This document shows positions 12,630 through 33,255 of a stretch of DNA of 55,819 bases, one piece after another. The position numbers and the translations under genes were made by a program. The notes below the pieces were generated by a model. That model did not search any database, was not told the origin of the DNA, and saw nothing but the letters and a program-made list of their open reading frames with translations. Within the stretch, counting starts at the first letter, position 1. Each line of letters starts with the position of its first letter. The DNA is from Perkinsus chesapeaki ATCC PRA-425. Taxonomy: Eukaryota > Protista > Perkinsozoa. The stretch is from positions 1-55,819 of the forward strand of contig JAAPAO010000189.1 in the NCBI GenBank assembly GCA_013115145.1, written 5' to 3'.

Positions 12630-14400
12630 TTACATGCCCATCGACAGTGGGTAACGGTGCTGGTTCCGATCCGAGGATGAGTGGTGGGTATGAAGCAAGC
12701 AAAGCTCGGTTGCTCGGCCGGGGCTAGGGATAGTTTGTACAAGCGAATCAGTATACATAGTTACGAGCGAAGGCTTGACAAAGGGAAGGTAAGGGCATTT
12801 TTGAAGGTCAACAACGGGCATTGAGAGAGACATACTCGAATCAGGATAATCGTAATCCTGGTTAGGGAAAATAAATTGCCCACCGATGAAGGTATTCCTA
12901 TTATTATAATACTTTAAACTCTAGATTTATTGTAATGGACAATAACAGAAGGCTGATGTGCTACTTTCTAGCACAATTGATGATGAGAATTCTCATCACA
13001 ACTTATCATTCAATCACGATTACGTGATCGATCCAATAGGACTCATAAAAGCAGACTGCAGGCCTGCAGTTGACGATACAGGTGTCTGAGCAGGAAGAAA
13101 ATATACCCCGGGTGGGATTCGAACCCACGGAAGAGCTAGTAGAGTGAAATCATTCCCTTACTTGTGGGCTGTTGAGAGAGGCTTCTTCTGTTTGCTGCTG
13201 TATGTTTGGAGAGCCAAAAGGCGAGGAAGTGAACGACGAACAACATGAAGCTGCTGCTGAGTTGCTCTCGTTTGTCGATCCACTACAGTCTTCTTCTTTC
13301 TGCTTTACCGTTGCTGAAACTGGCATGCGCGTCGAGAAATAGGAGCCTATAATAATGAATATAGTTAGAAATAATAAAGCCCAGACTTACGGGTGATAGT
13401 CAGAACTCTCGGACCAACAGTATGAGGTTTAATAATAATAGCAGCATCACCGTGTCGCAGGCAACAACCACAGACGTCGTCAGTTCCGGTAGTATCAAGT
13501 AGGTTTGGTAATTTAGCATAAGCTAGCCAAATGACGAGTATGAGGGCAGAAGTCGTACCGAGTGTGTAAAGTAAATAAAAAAGGGTTATCCTGAGGTAAT
13601 CGAAAGGTCTAGGGTTCGAATCCCGAGATGGACATTTATCCTACTTGAACGAAGTAGGGCGGAAGTGCTGTGCTGGAGGTGCGGCAAAGCCTATGGGCAG
13701 CCTTGTAGCGGCCTTACTGTTAGGCATCGCTTGCCTAGGAAATGCTCTGAAATGCAGATCACATTCCGTGAAGTGACAGTATTGTCCGCTCAGACACAAA
13801 ATGCTTACTTTGGTCGCTCGTGTCCTCTTAGATTCGATACTATTACTGGCTCAATTTGTGGTTGAGGGATGCCACTTTGTGTAGCAGGAGGGGGCTCACT
13901 TGGTGCTCTGTCTATAGCTCTGGGAGCTTTATCGGCGGGTTGCAAGAAATGATTACTATCAGTATTCAATGCTTCAACCTATACCAAGTTAACTGTTTTG
14001 TTGATAGTTATTGTTACTCTATGATGATGATGATGTTCGTAATGGTGGGTTTTCTGTGCCCCTCGGTGGTGAGCTCTCTTCGACCTGATAGACAGTCTCA
14101 CTGCTTAATTTTTACGCTAATCACTCGAGCTCCTCTCTACACATTCTAGTAATTGCGGATTTGTAAGTACTATTTCGAGATGTGATGATTCATTCGGCAA
14201 TAAGATCTTTCGAGAAACCGAGCAACCTTGGATACAACTTTTGTCCAACTAGTCCATCAATAAAGAGTTCAACACCTATAAGCAAACCGACCACGAAAGT
14301 TTCCGTGTAGCAGAACGATGTCCTCGAAATGACTTTGCCGAATGTCGTCGTTCAGATTCGCTAAGTACGCATAAATAGTAGTTCAGAGTCTTATAAATGC
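12630..14400 (-). CDS. Multi-exon low-complexity (Ser/Pro-rich) hypothetical protein
   Basis: Exons such as VEALNTDSNHFLQPADKAPRAIDRAPSEPPPATQSG... and MPVSATVKQKEEDCSG...SLNSPQ|TPVSSTAG; intron 13161-13086 joins in frame. Ends uncertain. Confidence 0.5.
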
Positions 14401-14503: not shown

Positions 14504-14576
14504 GGTCCTGTAGCTCAGTGGTTAGAGCGACGGTCTTATGAGCCGTAGGTCGTGGGTTCAATCCCCGCCGGGACTA
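14504..14576 (+). tRNA. tRNA-Ile(TAT): tRNA-Ile, anticodon TAT, intronless
   Basis: GGTCCTG acceptor stem pairs with CGGGACT plus discriminator A; A-box TAGCTCAGTGG; anticodon arm ACGGT-CTTATGA-GCCGT; B-box GGTTCAATCC; 73 nt. Confidence 0.95.
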
Positions 14577-14883: not shown

Positions 14884-15989
14884 ATGACAGGTGCAAAAGA
14901 GGAGCCTTTTTGCTTTGATAGATTCCCGCCATTTTATACGTAATAATCAATATTGATGAGATTGCAAAATTTACTTTTCAGATTGCAACCTAATCTCACT
15001 GTGAGAAAGAGGCAAATAGGTCTATGGCGGGATCGAGTACTGGAAATATGTAATAGCTAGAGGTGTCAGAAAAGTAATATAATATCAGGTAAAAAGAACA
15101 AGAGGACCTTTCTCGATATATCAGTGCAGTCTGCTCCGCTCGTTGGAGAAGTTTTTGGCAACCGGGAAATTAAACGTAATAATAACGAAGAGCGTTCTGA
15201 GAATGAGTTTGGGCAGCTGGACTATCGACAAATCGGGGATGTTTCAAAAGGATATCTCCCGTGAAGGAATCATAAAATAATGTTTATTTTGGAAGTGCAT
15301 TACTCTTACTTCCACGAATCTATTCGTATTTTCCCGCGAAGCATATTATCGAGAAAACGCAATGGAAAGACAATATTAAACACCCGCATTAATATTCGTT
15401 CGAAAATTATATGGTACTTAATAACCAATTAAATATGATTGTAAATAAACTTCCGTTAATGTTTGATTTTCCTAAAAACAAATTTCGGCAGGTCAACTCG
15501 ACGTCGAGGGAATACGGGCAGTACTGACCGATTTGGTATCAACCGACAACGGGCGATGGTGCGATGCTGCCCGAACACGCTTTATGGTAAAAGGGCTTTA
15601 TTTTGGGGGTTATTGACTCCAACTAGGTTTTATGGCACACACCAGCTGAGTGGGGGCAGATTATATATGATTGGGTAATAAAGGGAGGAGGAGTGGTAGT
15701 AACATATTTAGTAGGCAACCAATACGGGGAAGTTGGGATCTGTTGAGACAGTGTTTTCACTTCACAGTGGAGAGGACTCGGAAGGTGCAGGTAATAAATG
15801 AAGTCACTGGGGTTCGAACCTGGGTGTATCGAATGACAGCATGACTTTCTTTCCTCTATGGTAGAATTCCACGGACTTCCTCCAGAGGTTATAATACTTG
15901 GATTGGAGAATCTTGAGCTCACCGGAAAGTGCGAGATTTTCCGGGGAAATACGACTGATGCCACCGGTGTTAAATTCTTTACTCAATGA
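14884..15989 (+). CDS. VPS25: ESCRT-II subunit VPS25, 7 exons
   Basis: Exons 14884-14939, 14982-15049, 15089-15175, 15492-15586, 15627-15674, 15715-15790, 15865-15989 give ...FPPFYTLQPNLTVRKRQIGLW...FGNREIKRQLDVEGI...VLWHTPAEWGQIIYDW...GEDSEGAEFHGL...TGVKFFTQ*. All are hallmark VPS25 motifs; all six introns GT-AG. Confidence 0.93.
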
Positions 15990-16643: not shown

Positions 16644-18232
16644 ATGTCACATGGTATCCAATGTCAAAGATTCCTACTCAAAAGATACCATTGCACCGCA
16701 CTAGGAATATTTTCGATAACTCACAAGAATTTCGCTGCAGCCAGCAAAGCTTCGAATCCAGCTCAAGCGTGATACACCGCAGTAATTTCGTGGCGCGTGA
16801 CTTGCTATTCAGGTTTGCCCGACGACGGCTAGAGCAATCTAGACAGGCAAAAGGACTTGCGGCTGACGGAAAGCCCCTTCCTGACCGAATAAGTAAATCG
16901 TTGGGTGCCGGGATCGAACCCGGGACCTTCGGTTGTCAGGTTTTGACAAGGACTATTTGGGCCTTCAAGCGGACCTTATGTACAGTCTGAACGATTTGGG
17001 CAGCTCCGCCGCGATTAATACGCCCTCTGGCATTCGAGGATCAATTAATGTGAAATCGATCACGCGATCGATTTGCGAAGTTTCGCTAGGTCCTATTGAA
17101 CCGGGCTGACACCGGTTACGTTCGGAAGATTGTGAAGTTCGCGAACACTGTGACAGGTTCGACGATTCTCACCACAACCGGATTTTATTTTTTGGATTAC
17201 GTAAAAAAATTTTGTGAAATTTTCGGAAAATAATCTAATTCTTCAGATGGATGGTTATGATACAATTCCATTTATCACGGCATTGGCGACCATGTGGGTC
17301 GGTAAGCTCGACTGGCGGAGCTGGGAATCTTGGTGAATCTTTCGCACTGTATAGGTTTGCATGTCTACCTTACTACATATATTTCCCGTATAGTGGTTGA
17401 TACAGGGAAAGCTCAGATGGCTGTGAGAGCGCATAGCTTATCGGGGAAGCCAAGCAGACCGATAGTGGTAAGAGTGGAGGATTAGAGTAGCGGTTAAGAT
17501 CCTGGATTGGATACCTTTCGGTCTCTGGTTCGATTCTATGGTGGTATATTTTTAGTTTCCCGTACATGGTATGGAGAAGGTTGAAGTTGGAGATAAATAT
17601 ATCAGATTTCGGACCAAAAAAGAGTTCTGGACGATTTCAAGAATCTTCCCGTTTCGCGTACCGAGGATGCATACCATCTCAGGTAAGGAGGGATGTTTGT
17701 CTGTATGGGAGGTATGTGTTTATAATATAACTGTTGACAATGTTTCTATCACCATTCAGCTATTCATGTCTTAAATCCCACAAGTGACAGAAATGAGTAA
17801 ATACGTTATCGTTTATGGGATTGTAGATGTTGGCCATCACATAAATACATGTAATGGCTCCAGAAGGAGGAGGAGGATCCACACTTTTCGAGATGATAAA
17901 CCTAGGAATATTCGTTGACGGTTACCAAGAGCAAGCATGAAGCTAAGAAATGTTTTTCAGATTCAGACAGATATGAGAACCTCTCCAAGGACTTGGTCAC
18001 AACATCTGATCTTGGTCAGGATTATTTCCAACTTAACAACACTGCGGTTTCAACCCAAGTCATGCATCCTGGCCTTCCAGCCTTGGCGACATCTGACGCG
18101 GAGAGGAACGATGGAAAGCGAACTAAGTTCTTGGGTGCCGGCGTTGGTGTAACGAATGGCCCTCCTTATGCCGAATTCGATGGGAAGATGTCTCCAAATG
18201 ATGGTAAGGATAATATTGACTTTCAGCTCTAA
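16644..18232 (+). CDS. Multi-exon hypothetical protein, possibly organelle-targeted
   Basis: MSHGIQCQRFLLKRYHC...ASNPAQA|FARRRLEQSRQAKGL...; several GT-AG introns; terminal exon ORF ends at 18232. Full frame not resolved. Confidence 0.45.
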
Positions 18233-18539
18233 AATATTATTAGTATTCCTCAGAGGAATTGTCATATGATCGTCTCATTAACTCAATAAGTATAGCGCTT
18301 GAGGAAGACTTGGATCGGTCTGTCATCATGCGACTGCTGAGACTTACCGAGACTTGCATTGTGCCGCCGGTGTCCCATTTTCTGAGGGGACACTGTCCCC
18401 TCAGAAAATGAATCTGAAACGGTTTTCATATTTGTTCTCTCTCTCGCAATTAACCTTCGTCGAAGAGAGAATCTCACGCGCGCTCCTTCACGAATGCGGC
18501 GAGTGAAAAGTGTATTATTTTTGATTTGTCATTTTCAGA

Positions 18540-19167
18540 TGAGAAGAATACATTCATCGCGAAGGCATTCTCACCCATCACCAATTGGTGGGATAATATA
18601 TGGAAGGAGGATGAGAAGGAGAGGGTTGCGTCAGTCCGAGGAAAATTCCGTATAGAAAAGTAGTCGAAGATACAAATCGATTACGTGATCGATTATGCAG
18701 GTATAAATATCAGATGCCAGATTCGGCTGATGGGGTTTGGAAAACTGGTGGAATCCCGGAAGTGAGGAATGTTCCCGGGGGGATTCGAACCGGGGACCTC
18801 TCGGTTGTTAGGTTCGCAAGGACGTTTTATCTATACGACTTGGTCGTGACGGTTTTCCGGCGAATTCTGGAGAAGAGAGGAAACTTCTGAGGTTCTTTGA
18901 GGATCCTTTTGGAGATAAAATACAAAAGAAGGATTTACATGTTTGACAAGTGTTGTTTCTGAGGCTACCGGAAGGTCCCGGGTTCGAACCCCAGTGGGGT
19001 TACCCAACAAGAGGAGTCAATTTGACGAGAACAGTCTGAAGATGGCAAGTTGTAACGACCACCTTGTTCACCAAATTAATCGTCTTACTAGCGATACAGG
19101 ACTCACAGTAGACATGAGAGATCGACGAAAAGGCTCTTATTGTGTAGTGGACCTCAACTCCTTCTGA
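18540..19167 (+). CDS. Multi-exon hypothetical protein fragment
   Basis: Exon-like segments DEKNTFIAKAFSPITNWWDNIWKEDEKE and YKYQMPDSADGVWKTGGIPE bounded by AG/GT; last ORF ends at 19167. Confidence 0.35.
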
Positions 19168-19439
19168 GAGAGTTCATGTGTGACACAAACGGATGATGAA
19201 CGGAGAAGTTCTATCTTATCATCATCGAATATGTGACGTCTCTTCTATAGACTATCTCCTCATACGACTTTTACTCATATACTTTACATCATCATAACTT
19301 ATAATATTAGACAACATAAATGTAGATAATCAAGAAGCGCCTAATTGTATTATTTTTAGTAGCGTGAGGCACATACTACTGAAGGAACAAATCCAAGCTT
19401 AATATGCGTTTCCACTGAAACCGGTGCTACTGGAAACTT

Positions 19440-20430
19440 TCCAGGAACACTACGAGGACGTCTCCGGCTCTGTTCCCACATATAAATAAATCACAACTCG
19501 TTCGTCGTCCTTGAACTAGCCCCATAAATGGACCATCATCGAGGCTCCCGGCGGCGGTCCCGCGTGAGTAGCGTAACTGCAAGTCACGATCGTCTAAATG
19601 AGTTCACTACACCACTCCAAGATCTAATTAGTAAAAGCCAAATTAGTTGAAGCCCAGAAAAAAATGATACTTTCCCAGATCAATTTAGCAACTTGCTCAC
19701 CATGATTTCGATAAAGCTGCCTATACCATTTCACGCACAAGTGCATCACGTACGTTAAATGGGTTTCAGACTGCAACAGACAGCATTTGGTCCGATCAAC
19801 TTCGCCGATTGTGAGTCATGATTTGTGATCAACCTGTTGCTTTTAGTAGTAAGATGAGGTTACTAGGGTGACGATGTGGGTTACTAACCTCCATCATCAC
19901 GTGGGTAGTGATGAGAATTCACTGACGCAAACGATGACAGAGGAGGCGTATCAAGCATCCACCGCAGAATTGATATCTGATGGTGCATTGAGCCTCCGTC
20001 CGCTCTGGTCACGAAATTGGCCTGGGCTTCTACTAATCTGTTCTGGGTTATATTAACTTGTTCTGGGCTTTTACTAATTTGTTCTGGGTTATATTAATTT
20101 GCTCTGGGCTTTCACTAATTAAATCTTGCAATGGTATAGTTTTTGAGAAGTCACTAATCTGGTGGCTTCGACCCAATCCATACCAGTGATCGATGCCATA
20201 TGAACAAAGCAAGATATCCCTAGAGGTGTATAAAGCCGTGAGACTTTCTTTCATCTAATGAGGTGCCCCATCGACTGCGTTGATATTGTTGACCCTTGAG
20301 CACCCTCTGTAGCACCAGCACCACGCATAAACGCCTTTGCCGCCATCATAATCGTAATCTCCAGATCTATACGGCTCCTGAAGTGTCCAGCTGGACGTAG
20401 CTGCTCGAGATTTTGCTCCTCATAAAGCTC
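19440..20430 (-). pseudogene. Possible decayed non-LTR reverse-transcriptase fragment interrupted by the MITE
   Basis: Joining the MITE flanks gives ...ISDFSK|THLDDRDLQLRYSRGTAAGSLDDGPFM..., loosely like RT RG.PQGS.LGP; stops present; weak. Confidence 0.3.
19605..20141. mobile_element. Non-autonomous CACTA-like/MITE element, degenerate
   Basis: 35-bp TIRs matching 29/35: left CACTACACCACTCCAAGATCTAATTAGTAAAAGCC; right reverse complement AACTATACCATTGCAAGATTTAATTAGTGAAAGCC. Subterminal repeats of ATTAGT..AAGCCCAGA in opposite orientation at both ends; TSD unclear. Confidence 0.6.
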
Positions 20431-20876
20431 ATGTCATTTTCTGTTCTGGAATACTGCAAGTGTCTCAATTAAGCATGTTGTTAGCAAAACCATAGGAGCT
20501 TCTTCGCACACGTGAGCACTAGAACAGCTACAGCTTACACAGATGGAGAACAACAATTGCTGCACTAGAGAGCTCAACTAAAGCACGTAACTTTGCCCAA
20601 CGGTAAATCACCACCGCATCTCCCACGTATCAAGGCTACCGGCATGAGCCTGCCTTCGCTGGAAATAATGCCTATTATCGATCACATCTAAGACTTGGAT
20701 GCTCACAAACTGATACGAACTCAACATGGTGAGTTGTAGGATTAGACTTATATCCTAGATAAGAAGTTGCCGAGTAACGCTTACGAGTAAGCGAAGATGG
20801 GAGAGTCATATGACCAAACCTATGGCACTGGCCATTAAGGTTCGGAATGACCTTTAGCGGAAAAGGGGGGACAGGT

Positions 20877-21362
20877 TTAATTGGACATATCCTTTTGGAC
20901 ATTAGCGTCCGTAGAGTTGGTTTCGACCTTGCGCAGGTTATCATCCGATTCTCCGTTGCACCTGGAAAGTAATCGAGGAACATTATTTATGATAAGCTGC
21001 AGTTCATCGGTCTTATCATAATGTAACATGGCCGCGAACTGTTGCTTAGTAAAGTAAAAACCGTGAAAATCTCTGTCCATGACGAAGGGCTGTGGGGCGT
21101 CGGCGCATGGGTTATAATGCATAGGGACATCCTTTAAACCACGCTTGTTCCTCCACCAGGGTGCGAACCATCGCCAGTTGTACTGTTGATACTCCATAGT
21201 GGTGTTGTTGGGGATAGTGACCTCATGACGAACGTAAAGCTTCTTCAAGGAAGAGCCATAACTTATCTCTATGCAGTACTTAGCAGGGAGCTTGTCTAGA
21301 AGGCCACCAAAGACGGAGATTACGAGTAGCAGAGGAGATAGGATACGAGTAGCAGAAAGCAT
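20877..21362 (-). CDS. Secreted hypothetical protein, paralog A (161 aa)
   Basis: Signal-like MLSATRILSPLLLVISVFG; intronless; near-identical to 24431-24916. Confidence 0.75.
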   Translation of the reverse strand: MLSATRILSPLLLVISVFGGLLDKLPAKYCIEISYGSSLKKLYVRHEVTIPNNTTMEYQQYNWRWFAPWWRNKRGLKDVPMHYNPCADAPQPFVMDRDFHGFYFTKQQFAAMLHYDKTDELQLIINNVPRLLSRCNGESDDNLRKVETNSTDANVQKDMSN

Positions 21363-23064
21363 TGGGGAAAAGGCTGGTTACTGACAACAAGTGTAGTCCA
21401 TTAGCTCACGAGGACACTAGTAAGCTTCACAACGGAAGTAAACAAGTATATGCGGGAAAAGCTAAGACGATGAGGAAGAACCCCAATCCGCTGGAACAGC
21501 GAGAAGAGCTAATTGGGTAGTTGTTCAGAACTTGGGGGATGCCACGTCGCACGATATGTCACGTCACAGGCTATGTCATGTCGCATGACGCTGGGAGGCA
21601 GAGAGTTGATCACGTTGGATTAGCCGCGATGCTTTAGAAGTGATGGGAGATTCAACTTGTACTGACGCCGTGTGGATGATTCGTACACTCGGAGCATCTC
21701 GACACCAACACTGCTTCTTTACCAGAAGACAATGATTTGAAACAGCCCTATAAGTTGCACTATACCGCTAAAAGGTGCGTGTTCCTCGAATGTTATTAGC
21801 AAGGATCACAGTCGCCCGGGACGATCACTAATTGTCGAATGCTTGCCTATTAGTAACACCGAATACGGATAGTTTCATCAGCTTAAGATCGATGTAACGG
21901 AGGTTCACCGACGACAGTCGGAACCGTGAGAACAGGGAGGATAGAGCTCTCGAGTGGTAGGAATATTGAAAGCGACAGTGATGACCATAATAATGTTAGC
22001 TGATTCAGTTTGTTCATGGATCCTAACATAACTGTAAACAGTCATGATATGGTGAGGTTGATAATCCAATGAAGGCGACTCGGCCTTCGCCCAGCTGCTC
22101 CATCGATGCGTGTTCGTTTTTCCAATTGGCGCACAATGAGCCGCTGATTCTTTCAAAGAAGAAATCTCTGATAACGAGCTCGTTTGAACCCCAACACCAC
22201 ATTCGACAGCAAGCGAATCATCACAGCGAATCTTGTGTATCTTATGGTAATGGTCTAAATGTGCCAAGTTGAAATTTCAGGGGTGTGAAACGCGCAGGCA
22301 TGCTGTTGGCGGGGAGGAGGGCGAGAAAGGCGTTTGTCACCACGAAGGACTTCTGCGCGGGAAAAGCAAACACGGAAAGTTGGACAGATACGAGATAGCT
22401 GACTCGCGAAACTCGACCTAATTCTTTCTGGAGCAGTTAGAGGCTCTAAACCGCTCCCTAGTGACGGCTTGAACACTCTAGACATGTGTTTCCCATTATC
22501 TTTGGCTGGTGGTGAAACCGGTCACCAATATGAACAAGGATATCAAGCACAGAGTCTTAGAATCCTCTTGGCAATGATTATCGTGAATCCTATTACACGC
22601 AAGGGCACAGCCCCCTGTTAACTCAGGATCTCGAGTGGTCAACCCAATAAATAGATTATGGCAAATAGAAGGTCACCGACGACCCCAGGAGGCCATCAAT
22701 ATTCACAAACTCCAATTACTATATTCAAACTACAATATTGAGGACTTCGACAAACAGATGGGAGACGAAGAGCGGCGTTCACATGGCACCCCGGCCGGCC
22801 ACTGTGCCGGACACACTGTGAGGGGTAACACCAATAAAGGGCGAGGGAGTTAGTTACATCGTGCAAATAGCTTTAATGATTGATTCCCATTGCAAACTAG
22901 TTCGACAACAGGAAACCAAGTCTTTTGTTTCGTCTCATAGTTCCACGGCGAGCCAATGAGATGTAGCATACCTTAATCTTGCATTCTTTCACCAATGACG
23001 TCTCCGCTCGAAATAACACTTCCACCGTCCGTGTGTCGTCTTGTTTGTGTTCTATTATAAACCA

Positions 23065-23604
23065 ATGAGAACCTTCAAACGTATTTATGTCATCGCTATG
23101 CTATGTTATGCTGTTGTGGGAGATGTGCCATTGTTAGACTCAATTGATGAAGTCTTGCAGCTCGGAGAGGTCGAACTCGAAAGACAGGACAAGGATTGCC
23201 CCGAAATCCATCGCGTGTTCGCGAAGTTCACTGGCTCTCGCTTCAAAATGGACGTGATGCTGAAAATGACATTGAAGACATCAGCGAAGGGAGCTAGGCC
23301 TCCCAGCTATAGTACTTATTCCTTCACGAGCCCCATTAAGATGTTTCAAGATGGCCAGGAGGAAAGCTATTGGGTTTCATTGGACGATACTGCTGAACAG
23401 GAGAGAATGCTTGGCATAACAAATGCCTCTGTTGAAGATACCGTTATCTTGAACGAAGCATTTAAGTTTTGGATCAAAGTCGACAAAGATTTGCTCTGGG
23501 TGGTTTTGGAGTTTGCTGAGAAGGATAAGGAACCTTCTTGCCAATACGCGATGTACAAGAAGGCTTCATCAATCATGTCCCACTTGAATAGTCTACGGCT
23601 TTAA
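23065..23604 (+). CDS. Intronless secreted hypothetical protein (179 aa)
   Basis: ATG at 23065 gives MRTFKRIYVIAMLCYAVVG (signal-like); open to TAA. Confidence 0.75.
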   Translation: MRTFKRIYVIAMLCYAVVGDVPLLDSIDEVLQLGEVELERQDKDCPEIHRVFAKFTGSRFKMDVMLKMTLKTSAKGARPPSYSTYSFTSPIKMFQDGQEESYWVSLDDTAEQERMLGITNASVEDTVILNEAFKFWIKVDKDLLWVVLEFAEKDKEPSCQYAMYKKASSIMSHLNSLRL

Positions 23605-24430
23605 CCTTGTTTGATGTAACAGAACAGTGATTGCGTTTACAGACTAAACTAATGTGATAAAAATTGCACTTCACATTATGCAGTTCTACGGTAGGCCCCT
23701 CACCGTACCATCTACGGATTACGAACCGCAAACCGCCCCCTTTTTCACGGGAATCCTACCGAAGCCGATACGCGCGTACGTTAGGGGCCCTAACGTTACT
23801 TTCCTCAACTGTAAATTTCAATCGCCCCTCCCACATTTGAAGGTCACCGGCATGAGTATGCCTTCACCGCATAACGCCTATCATTTATCAATCACTTTTT
23901 AGAGGTTGATGCCTCTGGGCTACAAGTCTAATCTATTTACGTATGAAACTCCTCGGACTCCGAGGAAGGTAGTCTTGAACACGAGTTCAACTGAGTAACT
24001 TACAATAACCAATGTTTGGTATATGGCGAATCGCCATTGGCGGTAACTAGCACAGATTCTGGACTGACTAAGTCCGACTAAGGAGGCCTCAAAGCTTATA
24101 TACTTCTCTAGGGCGGATTCCCTGCGTAGGATATTTAGGTAACCTCTGAGGGCCTCACAGTCGACACTGCTTACAACGCCAAGGCAGATGAGGCTAGTGT
24201 TTCGATGGACCTACTCGTAGCCAGGGCTTTAACTCCGGAACTGTGATCAGAATTCCACTTCACTTATAACGAACTCAACATGGTGAGTTGTAGGATAAGA
24301 GTTATGTCCTAAATAAAAAGTTGCCGAGTAACGCTTACGAGTAAGCGAAGATGGGAGAGTCATATGACCAAACCTATGGCACTGGCCATTAAGGTTCGGA
24401 ATGACCTTTAGCGGAAAAGGGGGGACAGGT

Positions 24431-24916
24431 TTAATTGGACATATCCTTTTGGACATTAGCGTCCGTAGAGTTGGTTTCGACCTTGCGCAGGTTATCATCC
24501 GATTCTCCGTTGCACCTGGAAAGTAATCGCGGAACATTATTTATGATAAGCTGCAGTTCATCGGTCTTATCATAATGTAACATGGCCGCGAATTGCTGCT
24601 TAGTAAAGTAAAAACCGTGAAAATCTCTGTCCATGACGAAGGGCTGTGGGGCGTCGGCGCATGGGTTATAATGCATAGGGACATCCTTTAAACCACGCTT
24701 GTTCCTCCACCAGGGTGCGAACCATCGCCAGTTGTACTGTTGATACTCCATAGTGGTGTTGTTGGGGATAGTGACCTCATGACGAACGTAAAGCTTCTTC
24801 AAGGAAGAGCCATAACTTATCTCTATGCAGTACTTAGCAGGGAGCTTGTCTAGAAGGCCACCAAAGACGGAGATTATGAGTAGCAGAGGAGATAGGATAC
24901 GAGTAGCAGAAAGCAT
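24431..24916 (-). CDS. Secreted hypothetical protein, paralog B (161 aa)
   Basis: Same ORF as 20877-21362 at offset 3554; I saw 4 nucleotide differences, one non-synonymous (V14I). Confidence 0.75.
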   Translation of the reverse strand: MLSATRILSPLLLIISVFGGLLDKLPAKYCIEISYGSSLKKLYVRHEVTIPNNTTMEYQQYNWRWFAPWWRNKRGLKDVPMHYNPCADAPQPFVMDRDFHGFYFTKQQFAAMLHYDKTDELQLIINNVPRLLSRCNGESDDNLRKVETNSTDANVQKDMSN

Positions 24917-26071
24917 CGTTAACAAAGCCTATCACTGACAACAAGTGTAGTCCAATAGCTCTACGAAACTTCACAGCAAAGCTGGCTAAATACTGCCATA
25001 GTGTATCGTAGGAATTCAGAAGAGACGATCACGTTGGATTGGCCGTGACGCTCTCGAAGTGACGTGTAATCCAACTTGTGCTGGCGGCGCCAGTAGCGCC
25101 GCCAGATGGATAATGCCCTACACATAGTATTTACAGAGCATCTCGACACCGATATGAGTCTTAGAGTACCTTGTAACTCACAAGTTGTAAGATCCAAGGT
25201 AATAGAAATCAAGATACAGTTGGAGGAAGCGTGTTGCGTGGCTTCCGAGGTGTTGCCCGAAGCCTTTCAATGCCCCCCAATGTGAAACTTTGCCCTTGTG
25301 TGCATGCCGCACGTTGTGCTCCACGCGCCGTCACATATAGGTTGTTGGCATGCCTTACTTATTTTAATGACGCTCATGCTAGCAAATTGTCTTAGAAAGG
25401 TCTACCTAAACCAGGGTTCAGAAGCTTGTCTTTGCCTTGCCGAGAATACACGCCTTGCGGTATTGTATTTTTTTAAATCCAACCGATGGCTCCACTGGAG
25501 GCCTGTTGCTCCAGGTCGATCTCATAGTAACCCAACACTATCTTCTTAAGTGATAATGACGATAACAATTGAGGGATCAAAGGGAAAAGGAGTTATTCTA
25601 TTCTAACAAACTAATCTATGTACTTGCATGCCCTTTAGCTACAAATGGGAAGAAGTAAGTACAAGTAAACAAGTTGGAATCCGCGCACAGCAGCAGGCCT
25701 GTGACGCGCCATCGCCGCACCGGAGCGGGCCAAGGGCGCCGCGCCACCCCAATGAATCGACACGTCGGTCATGCTATGATTTAGAGTTACACTGCAAAGC
25801 CGATGCCCCACGGGTACCTTGTATTGTTCCTGAACGATGCGACGACTAGCGGTAAGAGTGTTCCTCCGGTCCACGAGTGGGCGCTCGCTTTCCAATGTTA
25901 TCCTCCTTACGGAGGCACTTGCACGTGCGTTTGCCTTGCACGATTCGAACTAGCTGAAGATTGTGTGCCTTGTTTTTATTAATCATCTTCCATACATATT
26001 TTATTTCGCTTCGTTATGTTTATGCTTATCACTTTTCAAACTCAATCACTTCAATGCATCCGAAACATGCG

Positions 26072-26698
26072 TCACTTATCATCAAATTTAACACTTGTAT
26101 CAAAAATAGGATTCTCAAGCATTCGTTTCATCTTATCACAATTCAACGCACTTTGTCGCTTTCTCAATAACGCAGCAAGACTCTCCATAATGCCATCAGA
26201 TAATGACATCTTGCTCTCTTGCAGTTTCTCAACGCATTCTGCAAAGCCCATGAGCTTCTCATCTGTAAGACTCTCTCCTTTACCAATTAATCTTCTAATC
26301 GCAGCCTCGGCCAGATCCCATTTGCCATCATTCGTAGCGGACTTCACTATATAAAGTAGAGTCGCAGCAGACAAGCCATGAAGGTTATCCTCTTTCGATA
26401 GTTCTTTATCTAGCCAGTCATTGAGGTCGACGTATCGTTTTAAAAAAGATGCATTATTAACACCAGTCCAAGCAGTGCTGATGGTTGTGGGGGTGAACTT
26501 GCATCTTGACGACCCGAGTTCGATTCCTTGCGCTTGTATTTTATCCCAGAACGTGGGGTCCTGTATTTTCATATTAACAGCCTCGGTTATCAAATCAACT
26601 ATGTGCTGGCATGATGATGAACGAATCGAGACATCTACTCGGCGAGGTAATTCGGAAACTTTTAGACCGAAACGAACCGCAGTTGAGGAACGTGACAT
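26072..26698 (-). CDS. Intronless helical hypothetical protein (208 aa), possibly organelle-targeted
   Basis: Uninterrupted ATG-to-stop ORF; R/S-rich N-terminus; amphipathic helical composition. Confidence 0.65.
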   Translation of the reverse strand: MSRSSTAVRFGLKVSELPRRVDVSIRSSSCQHIVDLITEAVNMKIQDPTFWDKIQAQGIELGSSRCKFTPTTISTAWTGVNNASFLKRYVDLNDWLDKELSKEDNLHGLSAATLLYIVKSATNDGKWDLAEAAIRRLIGKGESLTDEKLMGFAECVEKLQESKMSLSDGIMESLAALLRKRQSALNCDKMKRMLENPIFDTSVKFDDK

Positions 26699-28059: not shown

Positions 28060-28747
28060 AACTCAGTACGACTATCACAATCGATGTGCTTCAGTTACCT
28101 CCAGCGTTAAATTTAAAATACTTCGACGAAACATTTACCAGAACAATATCCTTGGAAAATTTTTGATAAAATTTCCAACTGCGCTTACGTCATCATTTTT
28201 GAGTCTTCTTAAGCAATCAGTGAAAGCATCTTTATCGAAGGTCCAATGTGCTCCGCGGTATCTAAAAAGTCGCCGGTTCGATTCCTACAGTCGTCATTTT
28301 TATGATCGTAAAATATTTCACTGCACCTAAATAACTTGTTTGAAGAATATTTGAATTATCGCGAGGTCGACTTTTCATGTAAGAGAGCGTCTTCTAAGTG
28401 AAACGGTTAAGTAAATCGAACACAGGCGACTCGGGCGATATGTGATCATTTCCTTACCTTCTGGCTTTCACAGGATCGGGCATTTTTGTATCCAAATAGT
28501 GGCGGGTGAAATGGAAACCATCGAGTGGGACTAGGACCGCTGAAAAACGTATCTTTTCGCACTATGAAGGTTTTGGGAACTTACCGATATCACTTGAAGA
28601 ATCCTTGTTGATGCGATTTACCAAGTCTTTTCCGATAAAACTTTTCCCAGCTCCGGGAGCACCAACTACTCCGACTATCAAGCGTGTCTTTGACGAGCTT
28701 AAAAGATACTTTTCAAGGTCGAAAATTGACACCTGCGCGCCTGACAT
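28060..28747 (-). CDS. P-loop kinase of the uridine kinase/YggC (Yfr007w-like) family; 3' end not found
   Basis: Spliced (introns 28584-28540, 28457-28262): ...LIVGVVGAPGAGKS...IAVLVPLDGFHFTRHYLD...DPVKARRYRGAHWTFD...; shows Walker A, P(M/L)DGFH and RGA..TFD family motifs. Confidence 0.8.
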
Positions 28748-28894: not shown

Positions 28895-30534
28895 ATGAGA
28901 TTTTTCGTCCTTATCCCCTTCATCGCATCAGCTGCTGCTAGAATGGTACTCGAAGGGAATTTCGTGGCGCAGTGAAAATGCATCTTCCCACCTATTTGAA
29001 ATAACTGTCGGTTTGTTGATAAAAGAATAAAGCTTATTTTTCAATTTGTATTTCGCGCTTAGTTAATATAAGCAGTTTATCGCCATTCGCCAGACAGGCA
29101 GGATATTCTTTTAAAATAACAATTCGGAAAAATGCAAAAATTTCGAAGGAAACTTTTAAGGCAACGACTATCGAGTTTAAACCCTCATTGACGGAGGATC
29201 TGAAAGATTGGTAGGGAAGCTTGTTCACGAAGGCATGGTTTTAAAAGATACTTTTATCCATCGAAATATGAAATAATAGTTTCAATTAAATTTGCAATGA
29301 GTGCTGCTTATGTTCGACCTCGTAAAATATCTTTTCTTTTCAGATCAGCGATGAAGAGTTCGTGATTGAGGACCCGTAAGTATCTTTGTGCACTGCCAAG
29401 GTTTTTATTGTTACGTTTTAGGTACGAAGACTTAGGCGGTGAAATTGATGTAACGATATCTTGGGTTGAACCATGCAGGATACGTTTGAGGTTAAATTGA
29501 TGATTACTGTGTTGTATAGAGTTAGGAGTGGTAGAATATATTATGTTGTATTGCTAAACAACTCACTTTCGCGAAATCTCGTATTTTTAATGAGGGTAAC
29601 AAGTCGAATAATCCCAGATACTTGAAATGGATTATTTTCCTGCAGAGGTTGAAGCAGGTATTTCGTATCTCAAAAGATTCCCTTTTCAGGACATTCACAC
29701 CAGAAGTGATGAGTCTTATGAAAGAGAATTCAAGAGTTTCGATTCTAATAATGATGGTGGTATCGACGCACAGGAAGTGCGAGCTCTTTACAGGGGTTAT
29801 ATGGACCAAGCTGATCTATTCAAGTAAGATATTCCTCCAGGCATAAAGCTGGAAATATTTTACAAATTATTAATATATCTTTATACGCCCATGGCATGTT
29901 TTACTTGTTAAATGTTTCTTTCGCCCTTTCTTGTAGTAGTTTTTATTTCATTGGATTTAAATCATTAAATAAAAACTTCTGATTCAAAGCAGTGTTTTCT
30001 GTGACGGGAAGGCTGGGATCGAACAAAGAAGAAGAACTCGTTTGTCTTAAGGGATATAAGTTGAAGAATTTTTATTTTTTAATTTTAACAAAGGTAAAGT
30101 ATAACGCAGTTGTTACTGATGCAACTCTTATTACTAATCACGCTTTACTGGTACAGCTGTTAAAAACTTGATAGTTGTGACTGTGCATTAGTGGTGGATA
30201 GCACCGCCCGATACATCAGTTATGTAATGTATGGCGGCTTGGGTGGAAGCACGGGGAGGCTGTTCTTTTAAACGAGAGACAGGGTCCCTTGTCCGGAATA
30301 TGCTCCTCGGGAATAAAATGAAATTTGTACTAGCGCAAAAGGGAAGATGAAATTCAATCCCTATGGGAACGGTTGGCGTTTATTTATAACTTCTGGTGTA
30401 GAATCGTAGGATCTTTAATTCAGACGATCCAAGCTGTAAAACAGGTCTCTGGTAGGTTCTTCGGTGAAGCAGATAAGAACGAGGACGGCCTTGTGGACCT
30501 TGACGAGTACAAAGCGTACACGAAATCTCTTTAA
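28895..30534 (+). CDS. Small secreted two-EF-hand calcium-binding protein, multi-exon
   Basis: Signal MRFFVLIPFIASAAARM; EF loops DSNNDGGIDAQE and DKNEDGLVDLDE; last junction LFK|FFGEAD is in frame. Confidence 0.8.
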
Positions 30535-30628
30535 GGACACATTTCGATCAATTTTCTTTTTTCTGTAAAATTTCGTGTTTTGAGTTCAATTGAAATCTTC
30601 GCGGTGCGAAAAGATACTCAGTGGCAGT

Positions 30629-33255
30629 ATGAGAGTTTCCCGGAGGATATTTCGTGGCGCGGTGACTTTTGGAGGAGTTGACGTCTCTGTTGGGGTTACT
30701 GAGAGGCTGCCGAATGCGCTACCGGTTTTGGATAAATGTGAGGTAATAAAAGCATCTTGGGTTGAAGCATGCAAGATAGAAGATAGCTTATTTGTAGTTC
30801 CCACATAGTCCGTTTGATAATGTTATACAAGAAATAGACTCACAAGAGGATATCCGGGTTGTGCCGAAGTACGTGAGGAAAATAATGGCGATGAGCAGGC
30901 GGAAAAAAACGGAATTTAAAGAAGGAAAGTATTCCAGTAATATTTACGTGCAGGAGGTATTGAACTAGGGATCGTTCGGTTGGCAGGCGAAAGCTCTACC
31001 ACTGCGATAGGCAATACTTCTTATTTGTCATTCACTCTTTGTAAGGCGGGATCCTCAACGAAAGCGGCAATTATGAAGATTTCGGATAGAAGTGGAATCC
31101 CTCAGGAAGATTTTGTAATCAAATCACCCGGGATCGAATCCCGGGCAGGGCTTCTCAGATATTAACGAATAAAACGGGACCGTTCGCTCTCACCAGTCAG
31201 CGCGTTTCGGTCCGATCGACCCATCTAGCAAGGTTAAGAGAACTGGAATTGAATCAAGAGTAAATCTTGCAATCTTGCATTTCCTCAATGCCACTCTCTC
31301 AGCTTTACTGAAGGTGTAGGAGTAACAGAAATAAAAGATTTCCCGGAAAATATTTCGCCACATTCGATGCACGTTGGAAATTCATTCCGATTCCGCTATC
31401 GGCATGCCGACCAGTATCGGGAGGAGACAGCTCGACAGGCTGTGGAGAACATAAAGGAGAATGGTGTTATCAATTACTATACGGCGGAGAGGTAATAAAG
31501 GAAAAATTTCCGGTTTTTGGCGGAAAATTTTCATCACTTTTACCGGATTTTCCCAAAGATAAACTCGCTCCGGGGTAAAAGCCTTCATCGTTCGCAAAGA
31601 TGATTAAAATAAAAAATAGTTTTTCGTTGGGTTCTATAAATTTCCAGGCAGTTAAGTGGATTCTCTCAAATGAATCCAACGCCGTTAAGACGTGAAGGAA
31701 CAACTCATCCGGTTTAAATATCTTGCTCGAATTAATGTCGTTTTTCTAGATTTCCCATGAATTCGCATCTGATAGGCGCCGCGATAGAACAGGGAAATTA
31801 CGGCGAGGGAATAAAAGTGTTGGTGGATTGGTTTCGATCAACATCACCTATCGAGGAAGTGAAAGAAGCAGCCGAGGAGTAGTCGAAAGGTCCCGGGTTC
31901 GATTCCCGGCTAGGATATTTTTAGGTATATTTTTTCTGGAGATTCTGACGCAGCTATCGGGATTTTACACCGGGCAGGAGTGCACACGAAATCTGGTTTA
32001 TTGCAATTGATGGAATTATTGAACGAATCGACTGGAAATAATGCATTTGAAGGCGCGTTGAGGAGCTTTATGGAAGGGCGGCTGTGGGAAATAAGTGTTA
32101 ACCAGGCCAGTCCGTCATGGCGGTGAGTTGCTATCCTGTTCGCCCGGGTTCGATTACTGGTGGTTGCGTTTTAGGTGGAATATGGCCGCTTCCAAGCGGA
32201 TCGGTAAAAGTGTGGAAATTGAAGTTGGTGATGTAGTTTTGGATGAAGGGTGATAATTTGAGGAATTTCGGAAGTTTCAGAATGTTCCCTATAAATTAAT
32301 GTTATTTGTTTTCCCAATATTTGTCGGAGAATCTAAGAAAATCGGATCCAGATATTTCAAAAAATAGCGAAAAAGATAAGATTGCAGAAGTGCCGCGCTT
32401 AAGCAAGTACAAAGTGTACACCACGAAGAAGACGGAATTCCTGCTTCATTTCCTGGCTTTTCAGACGCCTCCGAAAAGTGACTCCTTGCATGGTTGGCCG
32501 ATTCTCCCTGTCGTCTTTGATGCTCCCGAGGGAAACACCGATCGGTAAAGAAATTGAATTGGGAACTTTGCAAGGGACTGATGAGATCGATGAACGGTTC
32601 GTTAATGAAGTTTGGACTGACGGGCTGGTTGAGGATGAGGCGGAGTTCTTCCTGGCGACAGATGCGAGATTTAGAGGAAAAATTAGATATAGTGAGTTGT
32701 TCGGCATTTACTGTTCTGGCTGGGAAAACAGGGGAATTTTGGGGAAGGAATAAAATGGGAAATTGAAAGAATAAAAAAAGGGAAAATTTAGGTAACAATT
32801 GCCAAGAAGGTTTGGTGGATGATCATAGCGGATTGAGTATAACTACTTTTAACAAACTAGAGACAGGGAAGTTTGGCAACCTTGTTGGATATCGTGAAAC
32901 CTATCAGTTTTCATTGTCATTCGGGTTGTGCTGAAATCCATACCAGCGGTGGTCCGAAAAAAATTCATTTTCTTCGGACTAACCAGATTTGATGGATTCG
33001 ATTTGGAAGTCGAACTTCTAAGAATTCCACCCGTCGGTTGGGTGGGGTCAACTGGTTGGGCAGCAGCATTGCATGAAAATTTCAGGACGGTTAGTAGCGA
33101 AACCGTGGGACGTGAATCTTACCTACGAGCTGCTCCCAACGCGTGACGTGACGCCGCCAAAGAGAAATGCGCTGCTTGAATTCAAACTGCCAGCGGGATC
33201 ATCTGGATCGATTGTTCATAAGGCTTTGACGGGGGAAGGCATGAAACGGTTGTGA
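30629..33255 (+). CDS. Pus7/TruD-family pseudouridine synthase homolog, apparently lacking the catalytic Asp
   Basis: Spliced motifs in correct order: DVSVGVTE, YLSFTLCK, FALTSQRVSV, GNSF, IKENGVINYYTAERF, SHLIG, WNMAASKRI..VGDVVL, RLVAKP, LLEFKLPAGS. Confidence 0.85.
30937..31010 (-). other. Antisense tRNA-like sequence forming a 74-nt intron of the Pus7-like gene
   Basis: Reverse complement: CTATCGCAGTGGTAGAGCTTTCGCCTGCCAACCGAACGATCCCTAGTTCAATACC (D-arm, GCC loop, degenerate T-arm); GT at 30937, AG at 31010; removal is in frame. Confidence 0.75.
31879..31924 (+). other. 46-nt intron consisting of a tRNA 3' half plus T-tract
   Basis: GTAGTCGAAAGGTCCCGGGTTCGATTCCCGGCTAGGATATTTTTAG; perfect T-arm CCGGG-TTCGATT-CCCGG; removal joins KEAAEE|YIFSGD. 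Confidence 0.85.
32123..32174 (+). other. 52-nt intron with degenerate tRNA T-arm plus T-tract
   Basis: GTGAGTTGCTATCCTGTTCGCCCGGGTTCGATTACTGGTGGTTGCGTTTTAG; removal joins SPSWR|WNMAASKRI. Confidence 0.75.

Follow-up and report, generated by a model that had tools for sequence, protein, structure and literature searches.

Tiny spliceosomal introns of Perkinsus chesapeaki hold ancient tRNA-gene relics with a conserved B box, a candidate docking site for TFIIIC

The window analyzed here is the whole 55,819-nucleotide (nt) contig JAAPAO010000189.1 (assembly GCA_013115145.1) of Perkinsus chesapeaki ATCC PRA-425, two proteins of which were matched in the protein collection, one as P. chesapeaki FOL47_002983, and this work deals with a Pus7/TruD-like gene in it, of which four very short introns (introns 2, 3, 6 and 7) resemble pieces of transfer RNA (tRNA) genes. 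We propose that these are spliceosomal GT-AG introns whose bodies are ancient tRNA-gene relics, and that the B box of the relics is maintained by selection, most plausibly as a docking site for TFIIIC; as a whole, we give this explanation about an even chance of being right. The relics are older than the split between P. chesapeaki and Perkinsus olseni, and Perkinsus has a conserved class of B-box-bearing tRNA-gene relics that form much of the tiny introns of some genes.

tRNA-like introns of the Pus7-like gene

The host gene and its first seven introns are arranged as follows:

30629..33255, plus strand: Pus7/TruD-like host gene, from the ATG at 30629 to the stop codon ending at 33255, placed by a three-frame map
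30743-30797, plus strand: intron 1, 55 nt
30937-31010, plus strand: intron 2, 74 nt, phase 1, with GT at 30937-38 and AG at 31009-10; antisense relic
31115-31158, plus strand: intron 3, 44 nt, phase 0; sense relic
31260-31302, plus strand: intron 4, 43 nt; not tRNA-like
31492-31749, plus strand: intron 5, 258 nt
31879-31924, plus strand: intron 6, 46 nt, phase 2; sense relic
32123-32174, plus strand: intron 7, 52 nt, phase 2; sense relic

Introns 2, 3, 6 and 7 have GT-AG ends, and their excision joins open frames into a TruD/Pus7-like product, the frame being restored on removal as in U2-type GT-AG introns. The initial annotation of this DNA, made from the letters alone, had placed four introns at these positions and claimed that their removal restores a Pus7-like frame. 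Both points are borne out by the sequence and the frame map, by a Pfam TruD match to exon 5, which is weak (E=0.009), and by the TruD domain PF01142 carried by the gene model of the P. olseni orthologue.

Intron 6 corresponds to the 3' portion of a tRNA, from the anticodon-loop region to the terminator, with its B box at 31896-31906. It contains, in this order, the variable-loop AGGTC, the T arm CCGGG-TTCGATT-CCCGG with a perfect 5-base-pair stem, a 7-nt acceptor strand, the discriminator, TTTTT and AG, in agreement with its earlier description as a sense 3' half with a perfect T arm. Intron 3 contains CCCGGGATCGAATCCCGGG, and its T arm, CCCGG-GATCGAAT-CCGGG, has a perfect stem and one loop change (B box at 31131-31141). 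Intron 7, correctly called sense from the beginning, has an eroded T stem, and its B box GGTTCGATTAC at 32147-32157 is followed by TTTT and AG. The T stem is eroded in intron 2 as well, and the 5' half of the tRNA is absent from introns 3, 6 and 7.

On the minus strand of intron 2, the B-box complement AGTTCAATACC is found at 30956-30966. The antisense tRNA reading of this intron rests on a comparison by eye and on the orthologous 54-nt intron of P. olseni, which has an antisense AGGTC plus GGTTCGAATCA. The antisense orientation given by the initial annotation is therefore supported, whereas the extent that it claimed, from D arm to acceptor, was seen by eye and found no Rfam match even in a 101-nt search. 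Furthermore, a second in-frame acceptor at 30985-86, the homologue of the P. olseni acceptor, would give a 50-nt intron, and the true 3' end may lie at either 30986 or 31010.

Neither ARAGORN nor the Rfam tRNA model called a tRNA in any of the four introns, and only the T arm of intron 6 (31893-31909) scores in Rfam, via transfer-messenger RNA models; the intron elements are thus fragments and not tRNA genes. ARAGORN with lowered thresholds gave mostly noise and was set aside. These missing calls could be taken to mean that GC-rich hairpins in short introns resemble T arms by chance, and a loose T-arm detector (four or more of 5 stem pairs, no more than one loop mismatch) is indeed not enriched, with 75 matches against 72 expected. 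By contrast, the strict B box GGTTCGAWTCC, with at most one mismatch, has 16 matches in the window where 1.65 are expected (about 10-fold), and none of 100 shuffles (0/100) reaches 16. In addition, the register of AGGTC, T arm, 8 nt and T-run recurs, and the elements are conserved between species whose neutral divergence is saturated. The signal resides in the strict B box alone, chance is excluded at the family level, and we give mere resemblance next to no weight.

In introns 2, 3, 6 and 7, the B box GGTTCRANNCC stands in register with a variable loop, an acceptor strand and a T-run. In the sense relics of both species, 17-19 nt separate the B box from the end of the AG, which thereby ends 6-8 nt beyond the 3' end of the tRNA, and the T-run also serves as the pyrimidine tract; in the antisense relics, GT begins 15-22 nt after the B box. 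Both arrangements had been recognized in the initial annotation. Since the trailers have a T-run at the correct spacing and no CCA, the intron bodies come from tRNA genes and not from mature tRNAs, and the tRNA derivation first proposed for them stands. By comparison with known tRNA sequences, intron 2 looks Gly-GCC-like and the intron 6 family Thr- or Tyr-like, assignments on which we do not rely.

Age of the relics and selection on the B box

The locus was compared with two P. olseni assemblies (loci L001 and L002) reached through a neighbouring gene; they have conserved gene order and are identical in this region. Introns 2, 3, 6 and 7 are present in P. olseni at the same codon positions, with GT-AG ends and tRNA-like content. 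Their lengths in P. chesapeaki and P. olseni are 50 or 74/54 nt (intron 2), 44/53 nt (intron 3), 46/47 nt (intron 6) and 52/52 nt (intron 7); the differences in the first three would shift the frame if the segments were coding. P. olseni intron 3 holds GGTTCAATTCC and TTTTCAG. Intron 6 is 80% identical between the species, with a length difference of 1 nt that shows it to be non-coding, and intron 7 is 65% identical and ungapped; the alignments of both span the full introns and contain no more than one gap. Global alignments of introns 1 and 5, of unequal length, gave meaningless identities and were disregarded.

These similarities are found in a strongly diverged background. The protein is 51% identical between the species over 294 aligned codons, 4-fold degenerate sites are 25% identical (18/72) and so are saturated, and neither the 258-nt intron 5 nor intergenic DNA can be aligned. 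The core of intron 4, ATCTTGCAATCTTGCATTTCC (31264-31284), is about 22/23 identical in P. olseni despite the saturation of neutral sites.

Beyond this gene, ARAGORN calls one true tRNA gene in the window, and further relics were located in it:

14504..14576, plus strand: intact tRNA-Ile(TAT) gene, 96% identical in P. olseni
13086..13161, minus strand: relic in the last intron (76 nt) of a minus-strand gene; sense, with T arm GTGGG-TTCGAAT-CCCAC
13613..13623, plus strand: relic B box with GTAATCGAAAGGTC upstream, its tRNA type being that of intron 6; decay is further advanced in P. olseni
15810..15820, minus strand: antisense-relic B box; the T-run trailer of the relic is complementary to the plus-strand 5' splice site GTAATAAATG
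16910..16920, minus strand: antisense-relic B box at the 5' end of an intron of the plus-strand gene 16644-18946, 11/11 identical in P. olseni
17527..17537, plus strand: relic B box of a near full-length sense relic that fills a GTAAGAG...TTTTTAG intron
18781..18791, minus strand: antisense-relic B box, 10/11 identical in P. olseni
28275..28285, plus strand: relic B box; the P. olseni orthologue retains GAGTAATCGAAAGGTC plus the T arm

The syntenic region of about 14 kilobases (kb) includes 11 B-box relics, namely those of the four Pus7-like gene introns and those at 13115, 13613, 15810, 16910, 17527, 18781 and 28275, and all of them (11/11) have position-locked counterparts in P. olseni. Outside the B box, the flanks of orthologous relics are 50% identical compared with 40% for non-orthologous ones (permutation p ~1e-4), which indicates shared descent and not re-insertion. 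No relic intron specific to one species was found in the ~14 kb of aligned genes. These results show that the relics predate the separation of the two species and are not new introns. The initial annotation had regarded tRNA fragments as a source of new introns here, and this claim is not supported for any recent time, given that every relic in this stretch is shared, neutral sites are saturated and no lineage-specific relic was seen.

The P. olseni copies were found by position and not by motif, and across the 11 relics they match GGTTCRANNCC at 94/99 specified positions. Between orthologous B boxes, 16/25 differences fall at R57, N59 and N60 (binomial p=1.3e-4), while G53, T55 and C56 never differ and A58 and C61 differ once each in the 11 pairs. 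At R57, N59 and N60, orthologues are as alike as non-orthologues (0.52 vs 0.52), so the unconstrained sites are randomised. Identity between species declines outwards from the B box (79%) to the variable loop (65%), the outer T stem (39-55%), the acceptor strand (48%) and the trailer (41%), and the outer T-stem pairs are formed in 58-67% of cells and often broken in one species. From these sequence comparisons, the 11-nt B box (tRNA positions 52-62) is shown to be under purifying selection in both lineages and both orientations, and the remaining tRNA (outer T stem, acceptor strand and 5' half) has decayed or been deleted. As in sites of the 'extra TFIIIC' (ETC) type, the B box is conserved between species where there is no RNA polymerase III (Pol III) gene.

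B-box identity is 43/55 in the sense relics and 53/66 in the antisense relics. This equal conservation, together with the broken stems, argues that the B box is read as DNA, or in a manner independent of the strand of the host transcript, and not as an RNA hairpin; on the sequence data, this looks like the selected feature. A function in RNA would require that a T-arm-like hairpin or T-loop in the intron of the precursor mRNA, or small RNAs derived from the relics, be recognized by RNase Z/P, Pus4/Trm2 or La, with an effect on splicing or tRNA-like small RNAs as the outcome. It is consistent with such a function that the conserved positions are the universal T-loop invariants, that five double changes preserve outer T-stem pairing in a compensatory manner and that the T-run is kept. 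Nevertheless, antisense copies, which present the complement in the precursor mRNA, conserve the B box to the same degree, the incomplete pairing of the outer stem speaks against a selected hairpin, nothing is left in the 3'-half relics for the acceptor strand to pair with, so that no RNase P/Z substrate can form, and most relics have no A box for Pol III transcription of their own. We consider an RNA-level role improbable.

Conservation could also arise with no function at the locus, if gene conversion from active tRNA genes or new insertions kept overwriting the relics and the introns were simply tolerated landing sites. Perkinsus has very many tRNA gene copies, unusually many in P. marinus, and tRNA-targeting Dada transposons (PMC3706591). 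Furthermore, one P. chesapeaki relic corresponds to an intact tRNA in P. olseni, and the differences occur at positions that vary among tRNA isotypes. However, conversion would also refresh the stems and acceptor strands, and both are decayed in both species; in addition, the orthologous flanks retain residual similarity above that of non-orthologous pairs, and introns 6 and 7 can be aligned over their full length. Overwriting seems to us very improbable.

Decay in place, intron creation and the role of TFIIIC

The P. olseni intron orthologous to 13086-13161 (~150 nt) holds an intact tRNA-Ile(TAT) called by ARAGORN (L001:14205-14278), a gene that shares 96% identity with the free-standing tRNA-Ile present in both species. 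The C-terminal exon next to the intron is conserved, and the P. chesapeaki relic resembles tRNA-Ile minus ~32 nt internally, with the downstream sequence lost. This orthologous pair of an intact gene and a relic shows decay in place, a route with no need for intron creation. An intact tRNA at the orthologous site was observed for this relic only, and none is present at the four Pus7-like gene sites in P. olseni. We regard decay within pre-existing introns as more likely than the creation of introns by tRNA.

According to the explanation that we favour, the relics would be DNA-level copies of tRNA genes, including the Pol III terminator, and these introns would formerly have harboured tRNA genes, as one P. 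olseni intron does to this day. The tRNA genes would then have died, and the introns would have shrunk to the genome minimum (~45-55 nt) around the part still under selection. In sense copies, the adjacent T-run would have been co-opted as the polypyrimidine tract, and in antisense copies, its A-rich complement would have become the start of the 5' splice site. The B box would still be bound by TFIIIC at the DNA level, as at ETC sites, inside units transcribed by RNA polymerase II (Pol II); by this analogy, TFIIIC binding would be the most likely mechanism.

Alternatively, tRNA-gene-derived pieces could have been anciently inserted into coding sequence and so have created the introns, the conservation of the B box being a later and separate layer. 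The pieces would have been 5'-truncated complementary DNAs of Pol III primary transcripts ending in a U-run, or whole tRNA genes. In such a piece the T-run and the AG together would have formed the 3' splice site, with the 5' site contributed by a GT of the tRNA anticodon-loop region or of the target. Several observations suit this scheme. Each intron is almost filled by the element, the distance between splice site and tRNA 3' end is nearly fixed in both orientations, the variable 5' extent resembles 5' truncation, and the trailers are of the gene or primary-transcript type (T-run, no CCA). In addition, the GT of intron 6 lies inside a GAGTA[A/G]TCGAAAGGTC string common to unrelated relics, 2 nt of which are exonic; with the acceptor at 30986, part of the antisense D arm of intron 2 would be coding; relics in the window are found much more often within introns than in intergenic DNA; and 4-5 of the first 7 introns of the Pus7-like gene are relics.

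On the other hand, the two species show no presence/absence difference over the aligned genes, and there are no young, near-identical copies in the window. The orientations are about equal in number (5 sense, 6 antisense), and one orthologous pair shows directly how a tRNA gene nested in an intron turns into a relic, with no creation event needed. The empty sites and target-site duplications (TSDs) that the initial annotation proposed to look for did not appear either, as P. olseni has no empty site in the ~14 kb and there is no clear or consistent TSD. Introns 6 and 7 have GTA/GTG echoes of 3 nt, and intron 2 has a 6-nt GTGGGA repeat in P. olseni only; these are too short and inconsistent to be of use. 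We consider the ancient creation of introns by tRNA-gene insertion possible, although rather unlikely.

A broader and more doubtful proposal is that tRNA genes seeded a sizeable share of Perkinsus introns and that the retained B box couples TFIIIC to the Pol II hosts. The stretch from anticodon loop to Pol III terminator would then be a ready-made mini-intron of ~45-50 nt, from GTA(A/G) to T-run plus AG, the 5' splice site of antisense copies being derived from the trailer complement. The B box with TFIIIC would act on the host genes, for instance by marking tiny introns or causing pausing there. If this were true, it would mean both a new route of intron gain and a new job for TFIIIC.

Several points weigh against the account of decayed relics with a TFIIIC-bound B box. 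The TFIIIC step is argued by analogy, and the tight, orientation-independent distance from the tRNA 3' end to the splice site, together with the variable 5' extent, fits insertion-created introns at least equally well. The elements were chosen in P. chesapeaki by their B box, and the comparison covers two species. The invariants of the B box are those of the T-loop too, and a reader at the RNA level remains conceivable for the sense copies. The core TCGA is palindromic, and the G57-to-A changes, which break the palindrome, weaken this point without removing it. The splicing of the Pus7-like gene is deduced from frames and cross-species comparison, not from RNA. Finally, intron 4 is not tRNA-like and yet is strongly conserved, so that short introns may carry other constraints.

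Among known systems, ETC sites of yeasts and the mammalian B-box-only TFIIIC sites, including SINE/MIR relics (SINE, short interspersed element), have an isolated B box, as observed here. Like ETC sites, the Perkinsus elements have no working A box or Pol III gene, are conserved beyond their surroundings and are independent of the orientation of the Pol II gene. They differ in that the B boxes lie inside tiny spliceosomal introns, form most of them and occur several per gene; their origin in tRNA genes is also still evident, the terminator has become a splice signal, and TFIIIC binding would apply here by analogy. In animals, tRNA genes nested in introns of protein genes and tRNA pseudogenes are common. 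The intact intronic tRNA-Ile of P. olseni is of this kind and the relics are decay products of such genes, although the host introns are only 44-76 nt long, the relic is the intron, and the decay is selective in that the B box is kept.

The initial annotation had suggested an introner or a tRNA-derived SINE, and neither identity holds. The relics share with tRNA-derived SINEs a tRNA-related sequence with a B box, found in genes in both orientations, and their 5' truncation fits retroposition. However, they have no SINE body, no tail like that of a long interspersed element and no family consensus; most have no A box, the 3' end is the tRNA-gene terminator, and introns 3, 6 and 7 contain only the tRNA 3' portion plus the T-run. 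As for introners, known from Micromonas, Aureococcus, fungi and Amoebophrya (PMC7789003, PMC3609843), the resemblance is that a sequence family fills introns and brings or abuts splice sites. The relics, in contrast, are ancient and come from many tRNA-gene sources, the window repeats include no near-identical high-copy family, the stems and acceptor strands differ from relic to relic, and there are no lineage-specific insertions and no consistent TSD or terminal inverted repeat. Only small relic subfamilies, with ~15-25 nt in common, were observed. The introners of Amoebophrya, a relative of Perkinsus, are of a quite different, repeat-flanked kind (PMC7789003).

Neighbouring features, the host gene and significance

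The relics cluster by gene at 2-3 kb, 13-19 kb and 26-32 kb of the window, and no relic was found between 33 and 55 kb. B-box relics at 2170-2180 and 2663-2673, in the region of a Dymeclin-like gene and outside the compared P. olseni synteny, show by eye the same sense/antisense splice-site architecture. Within the coding sequence of the minus-strand gene 26072-26698 there is an antisense B-box-like AGTTCGATTCC at 26517-26527. It encodes GIELGSSRCKF, the stretch best conserved in a protein family specific to Perkinsus, recurs without change in P. olseni, and is either a chance match or an exonised relic.

Intron 1 of the Pus7-like gene contains an antisense and strongly degenerate GCTTCAACCCA that fails the B-box search, and on this sequence it is a possible, weak candidate for a fifth relic. 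A 25-mer in it (30754-30778) is 92% identical to 29458-29482 in an intron of the neighbouring EF-hand gene, and in both introns it sits 9-12 nt inside the 5' end, its reverse complement including a degenerate B box:

29450..29689, plus strand: EF-hand gene intron, with its GT..AG joint in RNA contigs and an antisense degenerate B box GGTTCAACCCA at its 5' end

Strings similar to ATCTTAGGTTGA recur in the EF-hand gene introns of P. olseni. The listed RNA contigs confirm the EF-hand introns 29450-29689 and 29824-30455 and cover this upstream gene only.

The deposited annotation of the window covers just 32010-33255 (194 aa) of the Pus7-like gene, about one-third of it, and the P. olseni model merges the gene with the upstream EF-hand gene. 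An exon-by-exon tblastn placed exons 1-8, 10 and 12 on the P. olseni gene, and phmmer with exon 5 against 1.8 billion representatives gave no match. The exons that end near 32544 and start near 32577 cannot be joined in frame by a canonical GT-AG intron (32545-32576). In the alignment, the segment at 31159-31215 appears to lack the catalytic Asp of the GTKDKRA motif, a position at which P. chesapeaki has Gly and P. olseni has Glu. This fast-evolving TruD/Pus7-like protein, with the 51% identity mentioned above, may be a pseudo-enzyme. In P. marinus, a 35%-identical paralogue of the aspartyl-protease neighbour lies at a locus (L004) with no TruD gene or DNA similarity, and metagenome scans with exon 7 and the neighbour protein family gave no match.

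Other features of the window were noted. A stretch of ~7 kb (~19000-26000) is absent from the syntenic P. olseni locus and contains a tandem duplication with 98% identical 300-nt copies (20715-21014 and 24269-24568). Between the EF-hand and Pus7-like genes, a 32-nt string (30591-30622) has a 91% match in P. olseni that lies on the other strand and elsewhere in the locus, and the string may be a small hairpin-like, possibly mobile, element. At 12958-13055 (minus strand), just past the stop of the gene ending in ...SAFMSPIGSIT, there are non-coding strings strongly conserved in P. olseni too, with the hairpins GATGAGAATTCTCATC and GTGCTAGAAAGTAGCAC and a C-box-like GTGATGAG; they may be a structured element of the 3' untranslated region or a small RNA.

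Full-text searches on Perkinsus introns and tRNA, on B box and TFIIIC, on tRNA-derived intron gain, and on introners and tRNA pseudogenes found no published description, in line with the initial annotation, which did not recognize it as a described intron-gain route. The motif and its spacing to T-run and AG help to place introns in Perkinsus annotations, and the orthologous pair of intact gene and relic is a concrete, datable case of intron content arising and being pared to a selected core. If the B boxes are in use, this alveolate parasite would have hundreds or thousands of Pol III promoter halves that largely constitute introns, and these would be a class of conserved non-coding elements with a clear biochemical hypothesis, namely TFIIIC binding.

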